Part shown: positions 30,320 through 32,932 of the stretch, in pieces
Position numbering within the stretch: position 1 is the first letter of the stretch
How the letters are laid out: every line of letters starts with the position of its first letter
Sequence record: NC_042060.1
DNA: 64,000 nucleotides
Strand: one strand, 5' to 3'
The notes under the pieces: generated by a model
Database searches by the model: none
Told to the model about the DNA's origin: nothing
Seen by the model: the letters and a program-made list of their open reading frames with translations, nothing else
Program-made: the position numbers and the translations under genes

Positions 30320-30814
30320 ATGTCAAATAAAGCTAAAGAACCAACTCTAACTAAAGAACAGGAAAAGACTCTACGTCTATTTGAACGTGCAGTTGGAGCA
30401 TCAGCTGCCGCAGCTGATCATATTCTTAACCGTGATGGTTGGGATGTTGTCAATGTACTAGCAGGTTCCGTAGGTAAACGTATTCTACAAACTGAAGTAT
30501 TCATTAATCCAGTTATCAATAAGATCAATGAAATCATTCCGACGTTATCTGATCCTACTGGATTCCAAAAGAACCTACAAACAGTTATTGCTGACCTTAA
30601 TCGACTAACTAAAATTATCAGTGTCCTATATGCACAACATCAAGGTAAGGCTGGTCCAGCAAATAATGAAGATGAACTAAAACTCATCAGTGAACTTGTT
30701 ACTAAATACACTGGTATTGAAGGTGCTATTGAACGCGGTATTGATGGTGTAATCCTAGCGATGATCGGCACTCTTCGAGAAGCTGGTTGGGACGAAAAAC
30801 TAATTCAACAATAA
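30320..30814 (+). CDS. Hypothetical protein (gp78-like), 164 aa
   Basis: GGAG SD; highly expressed-type codon usage. Confidence 0.7.
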   Translation: MSNKAKEPTLTKEQEKTLRLFERAVGASAAAADHILNRDGWDVVNVLAGSVGKRILQTEVFINPVINKINEIIPTLSDPTGFQKNLQTVIADLNRLTKIISVLYAQHQGKAGPANNEDELKLISELVTKYTGIEGAIERGIDGVILAMIGTLREAGWDEKLIQQ

Positions 30815-30825
30815 TGGAGTTTTAA

Positions 30826-32427
30826 ATGGCTACTGCTGACTTCGATAATGAGTACGATGATACTCCAGAAGAGAATTTACTAGATCAAATTGATGAGATC
30901 AATGCGCAACACGATCCTGACTCTAGTATTGAAAATAATGACGAGGTGGAAACTCCACCTTTCGTTCCTGATCAAAAAGAAATTAAACTACGTATTCCAC
31001 GTAATGCTAAAACTGGAAATATCCGGGATGCTTCTGAACCGGCTATTAAAGATAGTGCTAGCATTCTTACTTTACTACGTGAGAATCCCCAGACTGTTTA
31101 TAATTTCCTGGATCACAATAAAGAACTATTTAAAGCATTTGCTGATAATAAAGTAGATGACACTAGTGACGGTGTAAAGTGGACAGCTGCTATTCTGGAA
31201 GGCTTAGCTCACTCTATTGTTGAAGATGCACCAATCGGTGCAACTGCCCGAGAAGGTTCTGAATGGTCTAGTGAAATTCCTTATGGTGAAAAGATCATTC
31301 GACCTGGCCGACCTGTATTTAATACCAATGGTCGTAAAATGACCGATGATGAAACTCTAGTTTTCCTAACACGTAAAGCTAACATCGGTACGCCATATGA
31401 TACTTTCCTACCTCATTCAGGTATTTGGGTAAAACTACGTGCACCTACTGGTACTGAAGTAGCTGCCCTACAAGCACGTCTAGCACAATTAAAGATCCGG
31501 CTAGGCGCTGAATCAAAAGGTATGCTGTTCTCAAACATGGCAGCTGTGTTACTTAACATGGTTAGTAGTTTAGCACTTGCATGTGTTATTCAATCCAACT
31601 ATAAGTTCAACACCCCAACTGATCTAGAGCATGTTATCTCAGTAGCTGATGAGCCGTTCTTGCATCACGCACTAGCGGCGACTATGTATCCAGATGGATT
31701 TAATTATAGTTATCCATGCATTGCAGATGCCAATACATGTAACCATATTGAAACAGCGAAACTTAATATGTCAACGCTTGTTCAATATGATCTACTGGCA
31801 TTCTCAGAAGAACAAAAGAAATATATTGCACGTAAGTTTAATGCATGTACTGAATCTGATCTTAAGACTTATAAAGAAGGATTCCGTATTGAAACTCAAG
31901 TAACTGAAATGTTTGGTGACGTTGGTGTTGTTCTTGAGATGTGTACAATTGCTGATCGCCGAGAGTCTGGTGATAGTTGGATTAACTCAATTATCGATAT
32001 GACTCAAGGTAGTTTTAATGAACCAGTCGATGGTCCGCAACGTTCTCAGTATATTGCACGTTTACAAAAGATCTCTATTGCCCGTCAGTTCTCACATTTT
32101 GTTAAAGAAATTAAAGTACGTGAAGATGACGATGGTGAAAGTTCTGAAGACAATATTCGTACTGCAACCACTAATCGTGAAACTATTGAAAAGTTCTTAA
32201 CTAATATTCTATCCACACCGGAATATAATGACCGCTTTATTAATGCGGTGAGTAACTTCATTGATTCACAACTAATTGGAATGATTGCAATTACAAGTTG
32301 GAATTGTCCAGTATGTGAGTCACCTGCTGCTACTAAATTTAAAGAACGTTTCCCACACTTAATCCCTATTGACATGCTGTCAACTTTTTTTACTTTGGCG
32401 GCCTCGAAGTCAAACCGGATGGTGTAG
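30826..32427 (+). CDS. Conserved protein (gp77-like), 533 aa, probable baseplate-hub/tail assembly chaperone
   Basis: GGAG SD; YPC..C and WNCPVC motifs reminiscent of T4 gp26/gp51-type chaperones; ends ...STFF over a T7 run. Confidence 0.65.
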   Translation: MATADFDNEYDDTPEENLLDQIDEINAQHDPDSSIENNDEVETPPFVPDQKEIKLRIPRNAKTGNIRDASEPAIKDSASILTLLRENPQTVYNFLDHNKELFKAFADNKVDDTSDGVKWTAAILEGLAHSIVEDAPIGATAREGSEWSSEIPYGEKIIRPGRPVFNTNGRKMTDDETLVFLTRKANIGTPYDTFLPHSGIWVKLRAPTGTEVAALQARLAQLKIRLGAESKGMLFSNMAAVLLNMVSSLALACVIQSNYKFNTPTDLEHVISVADEPFLHHALAATMYPDGFNYSYPCIADANTCNHIETAKLNMSTLVQYDLLAFSEEQKKYIARKFNACTESDLKTYKEGFRIETQVTEMFGDVGVVLEMCTIADRRESGDSWINSIIDMTQGSFNEPVDGPQRSQYIARLQKISIARQFSHFVKEIKVREDDDGESSEDNIRTATTNRETIEKFLTNILSTPEYNDRFINAVSNFIDSQLIGMIAITSWNCPVCESPAATKFKERFPHLIPIDMLSTFFTLAASKSNRMV

Positions 32428-32459
32428 TTAATGATCTGAGATATAGTCGTCTTGAGGCC
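32385..32459 (+). other. Candidate -1 programmed ribosomal frameshift element
   Basis: T TTT TTT at 32385-32391 in XXXYYYZ phase. After an 8-nt spacer, GGCCTCGA (32400-32407) can pair with TTGAGGCC (32452-32459). Confidence 0.7.
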
Positions 32460-32888
32460 ACTTTCACGGAAGATAGTGGCCACATCCTACATCCAAACTT
32501 TGGTTATGATAAGTTAACTGAAGATGATACACACTTAGATAGACTATTATCGACAGTAGGGGCAGTAAGACCGTCTACAGCAGCACGTTTAACAAGAGAA
32601 GCATATCTACTTGATTACGATATCGGTTCACCAGAAAACGGACCCATGTGGTTAAATAAAGTAAATCCTAAAGAGGATTTTATCGAAGGTGGGTTGAGAA
32701 GGAGACTGACTAGAGATTTCTTCAAGTATAAAGTAGGTAGCTTATCTAATATGTCATTAACTGAATTCTTTGAATTAGCTTATTCTGAGGTAGAATACAT
32801 AATTGAATTATGTAGGAATATTACTCATAATGAGGCTGTTAATAACAATAACCAGTTAAATGAATTAAACAAGCCGTTAACTAAATAA
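32391..32888 (+). CDS. -1 frame extension of the gp77-like protein (165 aa; includes track ORF 32646..32888)
   Basis: The frame is open from 32373 through the slippery site to the TAA at 32886-32888 (checked codon by codon to the ATG at 32646). The internal ATG has only a weak SD. Confidence 0.7.
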   Translation, partial: YFGGLEVKPDGVVNDLRYSRLEATFTEDSGHILHPNFGYDKLTEDDTHLDRLLSTVGAVRPSTAARLTREAYLLDYDIGSPENGPMWLNKVNPKEDFIEGGLRRRLTRDFFKYKVGSLSNMSLTEFFELAYSEVEYIIELCRNITHNEAVNNNNQLNELNKPLTK

Positions 32889-32904: not shown

Positions 32905-32932
32905 CCCCTCTCCACATGGAGAGGGGTTTATG
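32905..32932. terminator. Bidirectional terminator
   Basis: CCCCTCTCCA / TGGAGAGGGG 10-bp stem, then TTTATG. Confidence 0.85.

Follow-up and report, generated by a model that had tools for sequence, protein, structure and literature searches.

A probable family-wide programmed -1 frameshift extending the core protein gp77 of phiKZ-like jumbo phages

Close to its 3' end, gene gp77 (PHIKZ077 in phiKZ) carries a run of T's that probably directs a programmed -1 ribosomal frameshift throughout the Chimalliviridae, giving gp77 isoforms of 533 and 687 amino acids (aa). The gene was analysed in the window, by which we mean the whole stretch of 64,000 nucleotides (nt) from sequence record NC_042060.1, and the locus in question spans positions 30826-32888. 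Identity over these 2,063 bases was 100% with Pseudomonas phage PA7 and 99% with phiKZ, and 47 phiKZ-type genomes matched them over the full length; the window is evidently that of a phiKZ-type phage. The phiKZ record annotates two genes here, PHIKZ077 (533 aa) and PHIKZ076.4 (80 aa). The features on which the argument turns are as follows.

30826 to 32427, plus strand: PHIKZ077 zero-frame open reading frame (ORF), 533 aa, Chimalliviridae core gene cg18.
32385 to 32391, plus strand: candidate slippery heptamer T_TTT_TTT in zero-frame phase, made up of the F521 and F522 codons and the last base of the preceding codon.
32373 to 32888, plus strand: open -1 frame, following a TGA at 32370-32372 and closed by the stop at 32886-32888.
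32428 to 32645, plus strand: unannotated "gap", apparently coding in the -1 frame and without ATG, GTG or TTG.
32646 to 32888, plus strand: PHIKZ076.4, 80 aa from its first ATG, equivalent to the C-terminal half of the -1 extension.

The zero-frame codons at 32383-32394 are ACT TTT TTT ACT, which places seven T's (32385-32391) in the correct phase for an X_XXY_YYZ heptamer near the end of gp77, as an earlier note on this DNA had read. Past the heptamer the zero frame continues for 11 sense codons to its stop at 32425-32427. The -1 frame was confirmed to open after the TGA at 32370 and, counted from 32391, to comprise 165 codons and a stop, 32391-32888 being the portion predicted to be translated after the shift. 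Its first ATG, GTG or TTG is at 32646, the annotated start of PHIKZ076.4, and the uncovered stretch ahead of this ORF, which the earlier note gave as 220 bp, measured 218 nt. The isoform sizes that it proposed were also arithmetically correct, with 522 gp77 residues and 165 new ones making 687. Runs of seven T's were depleted about two-fold in the window (16 seen, against 33 +/- 8 in dinucleotide-preserving shuffles), and runs of seven A's were about two-fold depleted as well. Together with the recurrence of the site and its frames at all the related loci examined, this makes the arrangement more than a coincidence.

By the proposed mechanism, two gp77 proteins would be made from one mRNA. Most ribosomes would remain in the zero frame to the stop at 32425-32427 and produce the 533-aa form, and a fraction would slip back one base with the phenylalanine (Phe) codons at 32386-32391 in the P and A sites. 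The slipped ribosomes would then read the -1 frame to 32886-32888 and produce the 687-aa form (gp77 residues 1-522 plus 165), in which the last short gp77 helix would be exchanged for a flexible linker and a helical domain. We infer the ribosome as the agent of the shift and, with it, a frameshift efficiency and a need for both isoforms in a set ratio.

Conservation of the arrangement was assessed at 63 junctions, which included ten annotated phages from six further host genera, 22 IMG/VR contigs, two Logan contigs, six more distant phages (Vibrio, Aeromonas and Halocynthia phage JM-2012) and 22 metagenomic contigs. The hosts comprised Pseudomonas, Xanthomonas, Ralstonia, Erwinia, Serratia, Salmonella, Vibrio, Aeromonas and Bacillus, in addition to the metagenomes, and the named phages included phiPA3, 201phi2-1, Psa21, PA1C, Xoo-sp14, RSF1, PCH45, SPN3US, Wellington and JM-2012. 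Identity of gp77 to that of the window went down to about 20% in this set, and locus GC content ranged from 34 to 59%. The codon pair aligned to F521-F522 was TTT TTN in 63 of 63 loci (N_TTT_TTN), and at every one of them the -1 frame was open for 130-198 codons past the site. The occurrence of this arrangement in every lineage examined supports the claim that programmed -1 slippage at the T run carries gp77 on into the downstream frame, and the check on homologs that the earlier note had suggested gave a slip site and an open -1 frame throughout.

Other properties of the 63 loci concern where the frames meet. The zero-frame stop came 8-46 codons beyond the site, the downstream ORF sat in the -1 frame at all 63 loci wherever it was annotated, and the +1 frame was usually closed within 1-20 codons of the site. 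Stops in the -1 frame occurred as near as 2-4 codons 5' of the run in several lineages and never between the run and the zero-frame stop, which pins the shift to that short interval. The base before TTT TTN was T in all non-Pseudomonas lineages, in phiKZ and in 201phi2-1, and A or G in the phiPA3-, Psa21- and PA1C-like clades. In the PCH45 lineage (locus L009, about 2240-2380, and locus L049) the zero-frame tail extended 44-46 codons past the site, vs. 8-22 elsewhere, and the dual-coding overlap was much longer, with both frames open throughout.

The two frames were searched and modelled as separate pieces throughout. When tblastn was run with the -1 piece alone, distant Pseudomonas phages (including phiPA3, 201phi2-1, Psa21, PA1C, Phabio and Noxifer) were matched at 34-40% identity, and the matches started at the first residues of the piece, within the end of the upstream gene. 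With gp77, tblastn found homologs in 226 phage records from more than 10 host genera. Locus searches seeded with single distant proteins returned near-identical loci only, or none.

These comparisons leave next to no probability for an artefact or a decayed gene, that is, for a homopolymer sequencing error or a frameshift mutation that split a once-continuous gene. In favour of this reading, homopolymers are prone to sequencing error, and joining the two frames would yield a single long protein. The T run is not a sequencing error, however, because it is intact, in a region free of indels, in the independent isolates phiKZ, ANB1 and Wadjak 2; moreover, the same arrangement was present in 47 independently sequenced phiKZ-type isolates and in every distant lineage, a continuous version was nowhere found, and the downstream frame appears to be under purifying selection.

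Selection on the slip site appears to act on its nucleotides, beyond what the protein requires. The first slip codon was TTT in all 23 lineages compared, and the other Phe codons in these genes were TTT in 162 of 420 cases (39%) and TTC in 258. In Xoo-sp14, none of the 14 other Phe codons was TTT, yet the first slip codon was. The codon preceding the slip pair ended in T in 18 of the 23 lineages and encoded Thr, Val, Leu, Gly, Tyr or Ala. About 25 nt past the run (window 32392-32415) were unusually conserved in nucleotides among Pseudomonas-phage lineages with only about 40% protein identity, in a comparison that took in aligned stretches of loci L002-L005, L014-L025 and L038. This conservation would fit dual coding in two frames, and no RNA structure explains it.

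The start-less stretch at 32428-32645 is, to judge from its pattern of substitution, protein-coding in the -1 frame and under purifying selection. Alignment of 28 -1 tails showed that the start-less part, 74 residues from the zero-frame stop to the ATG, was at least as conserved as the annotated 80 aa; identity to phiPA3 was 28/73 in the start-less part vs. 20/76 in the annotated part. Among 15 representative tails, one column of the start-less stretch was invariant and several others exceeded 80%. Compared with a 53%-identical relative (locus L038), the start-less part had 33 of 73 residues identical and nucleotide differences of 34, 25 and 46 at codon positions 1, 2 and 3, and the corresponding differences in the annotated 80-aa part were 28, 20 and 44. 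The excess of third-position differences in the tail was also seen within four clades. PHROG family 12109 (phrog_12109, 147 positions) matched the -1 piece from residue 33, well 5' of the annotated ATG.

When the -1 piece was run with HMMER against the whole of a set of 1.84 billion representative proteins, it detected 38 relatives, all of 45-175 aa, and no long in-frame fusion of the two frames. The first residues of these relatives aligned to query positions 5 to 89, a scatter that suggests arbitrary start calls. Homologs of the zero-frame protein were 485-633 aa long, with the length differences at the N terminus. That the two-frame arrangement is itself conserved and never fused argues that both products matter. 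A word-indexed protein database gave a single partial match to the -1 piece, because gene callers shorten such ORFs below its length window. The model of the -1 domain had a predicted local distance difference test score (pLDDT) of 79 and showed helices preceded by a disordered linker some 40 residues long. Its only matches were to small downstream ORFs of other Chimalliviridae, and the -1 piece had no named family in Pfam, NCBIfam, PHROGs or a PDB sequence search; the helical domain is confined to this phage family. One protein-database entry, a 96-aa "hypothetical protein, partial [Klebsiella pneumoniae]" from a 288-nt contig (P0021), was 89% identical to the -1 frame and covered its residues 29-119 (window about 32457-32729), the start-less gap included. 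It is probably a fragment of a phiKZ-like phage within a bacterial assembly.

Several observations weigh against a ribosomal frameshift. The slip site is weaker in one Pseudomonas-phage clade, where it reads A/G_TTT_TTT, with A_TTT_TTC in the PA1C group. Downstream folds were no better than those of shuffles in 8 of 10 lineages, Psa21 and pEa_SNUABM_54 alone being better; RNAalifold gave no consensus structure for ten Pseudomonas-clade sequences (-0.56 kcal/mol); and no Shine-Dalgarno-like or purine-rich motif was conserved upstream of the run. A possible start codon lies near the zero-frame stop in many lineages. Published RNA-seq at 15 min (control) gave 7995 reads per kilobase per million mapped reads (RPKM) over PHIKZ076.4, 1288 over gp77 and 1402 over gp78, and this roughly 6-fold excess fits a separate downstream transcript. 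Finally, the literature contained no proteomic, ribosome-profiling or immunoblot record of the long gp77 form that we could find.

The RNA data bear most directly on the alternative that gp77 and the downstream frame are two separate genes, the latter served by its own transcript, by reinitiation or by both, starting at ATG 32646 or at a non-canonical codon, with the T run simply encoding a conserved Phe-Phe pair. In addition to the RPKM step, the RNA of PHIKZ076.4 fell more steeply than the others when PHIKZ054/055 (shell protein, RNA polymerase subunit) were knocked down, a separate ORF of 75-155 aa has been annotated in nearly all relatives, the frames are fused in no lineage, and the short stop/start overlaps of coupled genes likewise place the downstream gene in the -1 frame. 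This alternative would nevertheless leave 85 conserved codons in the window without an ATG, GTG or TTG, and at least six lineages offer no possible start until after the conserved Gly-His and Phe-Gly motifs. Start positions were not conserved, the first possible -1-frame start ranging from 72 nt ahead of the T run to 261 nt past it, and ATG 32646 is preceded by a weak GGA only. The -1 relation persisted across annotated "gaps" of 12-216 nt, over which the relative frame of independent genes would be expected to drift; without exception the -1 frame was free of stops as far back as the T run, and an independent gene would not require this; and the codon choice at the run would be unexplained by the protein sequence. 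We give two independent genes a slim chance.

The high level of PHIKZ076.4 RNA fits an internal start site feeding a shorter transcript, and it fits equally a 3' fragment that accumulates because the terminator hairpin at 32905-32926 shields it. A k-mer comparison of the gap with the region upstream of gp78 showed nothing to indicate an internal promoter. An extra PHIKZ076.4 transcript may well exist alongside the frameshift, which would still be needed, despite the RPKM step, to translate the 85 conserved start-less codons. The step may also leave room for a third product, a free 80-aa half-domain.

The earlier note had envisaged a stem and a possible pseudoknot downstream of the heptamer. 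The 8-nt complementarity exists, between 32400-32407 and 32452-32459 with one G-U pair, but a structure was unsupported: the fold of the window downstream of the run had a z score of -0.46 relative to shuffles, and the related sequences yielded no consensus. The long-range stem that it drew was found in the centroid fold of the window only, was not better than shuffles and was not conserved, and it was rejected. The only cis element that appears to be conserved is the T run itself, of 5-8 bases, and for this reason transcriptional slippage has to be considered alongside ribosomal frameshifting.

Programmed transcriptional slippage, which occurs in bacterial insertion sequence (IS) elements and in some genes of bacteria and viruses, requires no cis element other than a short homopolymer and opens an overlapping frame. 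At gp77, the RNA polymerase (the phage non-virion enzyme, which transcribes middle and late genes) would slip on the T run, and a subpopulation of mRNA would join the frames and encode the same two proteins. The T homopolymer of 5-8 bases, unaccompanied by any RNA structure or Shine-Dalgarno-like stimulator, is what such a mechanism would leave as its sole conserved element; the flanking synonymous position tends to extend the run, and the window otherwise avoids runs of seven T's. In the PA1C group, phiPA3 and Psa21, however, the run has no more than 5-6 T's, which is short for efficient slippage by bacterial RNA polymerases. The run also keeps constantly to the phase of tandem tRNA slippage, an argument that is confounded because the Phe-Phe/Leu pair is conserved in the protein as well. 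We consider transcriptional slippage unlikely, though deserving of attention, and retain a ribosomal -1 frameshift as the probable explanation. Quite unlikely, too, is a fuller version in which the multisubunit polymerase of the phage slips on the T run inside the phage nucleus and so sets the isoform ratio, with PHIKZ076.4 RNA perhaps giving the free half-domain as a third product; if true, the polymerase reading would be the first programmed transcriptional slippage by a phage-encoded multisubunit polymerase, conserved family-wide.

The gp77 protein (phiKZ gp077) is listed as cg18 in the Chimalliviridae core-genome table and labelled "hypothetical". Searches of Pfam, NCBIfam, PHROGs and PDB sequences returned nothing named, and 11 diverse members of the family had no hub-assembly Pfam family at E <= 1 and only two unknown-function families in PHROGs. 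Four cysteines, in two pairs far apart (C298 and C305, C494 and C497), are nearly invariant, and their conservation suggests a structural metal site; Pfam gave a sub-threshold zinc-finger match only, at 488-499, in this region. The AlphaFold model of gp77 (pLDDT 78, predicted template modelling score 0.80) had no neighbour in the PDB by Foldseek (best E 2.1). In BFVD, past its own family, it matched six T4-like baseplate hub assembly protein/chaperone entries of 226-284 aa (E 1.7e-4 to 6.6e-3, probability 0.99-1.00, target template modelling score 0.52-0.55), a comparison of predicted with predicted structures. Two GenBank records already name a gp77 homolog baseplate hub assembly protein/chaperone.

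The T4 protein behind the hub-assembly name is gp51 (PMC3037559), a link that is made by name only. Neither gp77 nor 201phi2-1 gp136 was flagged as a virion protein, and their neighbours were; a mass spectrometry table lists PHIKZ077 at 0-2 counts. The Goslar virion study describes a T4-like hub and leaves gp81, which we took from the core-genome table as the Goslar homolog of gp77, unmentioned. The Churi study places the gp77 homolog among the early-expressed proteins. We infer that gp77 may act in assembly without entering the virion and be related to the T4-like baseplate hub assembly proteins; a working idea, drawn from fold similarity alone, is that gp77 could be a baseplate-hub assembly factor made in two forms. 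The tail or baseplate chaperone role proposed in the earlier note thus kept its baseplate-assembly part, through the fold matches, and lost the part that made gp77 a G/GT tail chaperone.

Membership of the G/GT tail assembly chaperones failed on position, size and similarity. Lambda-type G proteins are roughly 100-150 aa, far smaller than the 533-aa gp77, and gp77 does not lie between the tail tube and tape measure genes. It had no Pfam match, and the Foldseek matches named "Tail assembly chaperone" were noise (E 2.6-3.9, probability <= 0.06). What gp77 shares with lambda G/GT is the arrangement. In both, a -1 shift a few codons before the stop appends an overlapping domain from a start-less frame, the arrangement is conserved far past sequence similarity with the frames never fused, and the product is probably a non-virion assembly factor in two forms; for gp77 the two-product arrangement, with its -1 shift near the 3' end into a start-less frame, is indicated by comparative evidence. 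The two differ in that there is no sequence or fold similarity, that the gp77 slip site is a pure T run, and that gp77 adjoins neither tail tube nor tape measure genes and is a core gene without an assigned function.

Other frameshifted genes offer partial parallels. In T7, a -1 frameshift near the end of gene 10 at a slip site rich in Phe codons gives 10B, a minor, C-terminally extended isoform of 10A. The gp77 arrangement has in common with it the -1 shift near the gene end, the Phe-codon-rich site and the extended isoform; 10A/10B, however, is a capsid protein with a short extension, whereas gp77 is non-structural and would gain a 165-residue domain family-wide. Escherichia coli dnaX and the OrfAB of IS3-family elements use tandem slippage at X_XXY_YYZ and make a fixed ratio of products that share their N-terminal part. 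Slippage at these sites relies on two stimulators, one a Shine-Dalgarno-like element upstream and the other a hairpin or pseudoknot downstream; neither is conserved at the gp77 site, and dnaX frameshifting shortens its product whereas the gp77 shift would lengthen it. The systems of transcriptional slippage differ from gp77 in that several of its clades have runs of no more than 5-6 bases, a short length for slippage. With the T4 gp51-type hub proteins, gp77 shares a predicted fold, the GenBank naming and the absence of a virion-protein flag; gp77 is twice as long, has no sequence-profile match to them and has no comparable solved structure. We know of no report of a frameshift-encoded extension in a T4-type hub assembly protein.

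The gp78-gp77 unit lies between RNA polymerase/helicase genes and head genes. The neighbours of gp77 are gp78, the head proteins gp79/80, small ORFs, a RAD2/SF2 helicase and an RNA polymerase subunit; in the phiKZ record PHIKZ078 is upstream of PHIKZ077, and convergent small genes lie beyond PHIKZ076.4. Two further features of the window bound the locus.

30320 to 30814, plus strand: PHIKZ078 homolog, 164 aa, directly 5' of gp77 and in the same orientation.
32905 to 32926, no strand assigned: GC-rich hairpin with T tracts on both strands and a 9-pair stem that includes 7 GC pairs.

The hairpin, just past the -1 stop, is likely a bidirectional terminator that separates the gp78-gp77 unit from the convergent PHIKZ076.3-076 genes, and no terminator lies between the zero and -1 frames. 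A gene in the gp78 position preceded the gp77 homolog in the related loci whose annotation was inspected. Pfam found no family in gp78. In Halocynthia phage JM-2012 (locus L040, 353-757) the gene in this position is annotated as a metallophosphoesterase, and neither its product nor three other gp78-position proteins had a Pfam family.

Annotations of the region disagree among phiKZ-type phages. ANB1 has two small antisense ORFs, Wadjak 2 has nothing, and phiKZ and PA7 have the 80-aa ORF; the region is thus inconsistently annotated in near-identical genomes (locus L046, 1890-2192; locus L047, 1703-2212). A frameshift was annotated in no public record of this locus that we examined. Our literature searches found no mention of a frameshift in gp77 or in the Chimalliviridae, in agreement with the earlier note, which knew of no prior description for the family. 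Public annotations have very likely missed a second, longer form of gp77.

The gene concerned, gp77 (cg18), is one of about 70 common to all nucleus-forming jumbo phages. Should the frameshift prove real, the locus is mis-annotated in more than 200 public genomes, which show a shortened small ORF with an arbitrary start, small antisense ORFs or nothing, and proteomic databases, knock-down screens and interaction studies have consequently overlooked a 687-aa isoform of a core protein. The T run would be a clean natural case of a frameshift site that has persisted for a very long time without a recognisable stimulator. The fold link to T4-type hub assembly proteins would provide the first functional lead for both isoforms.

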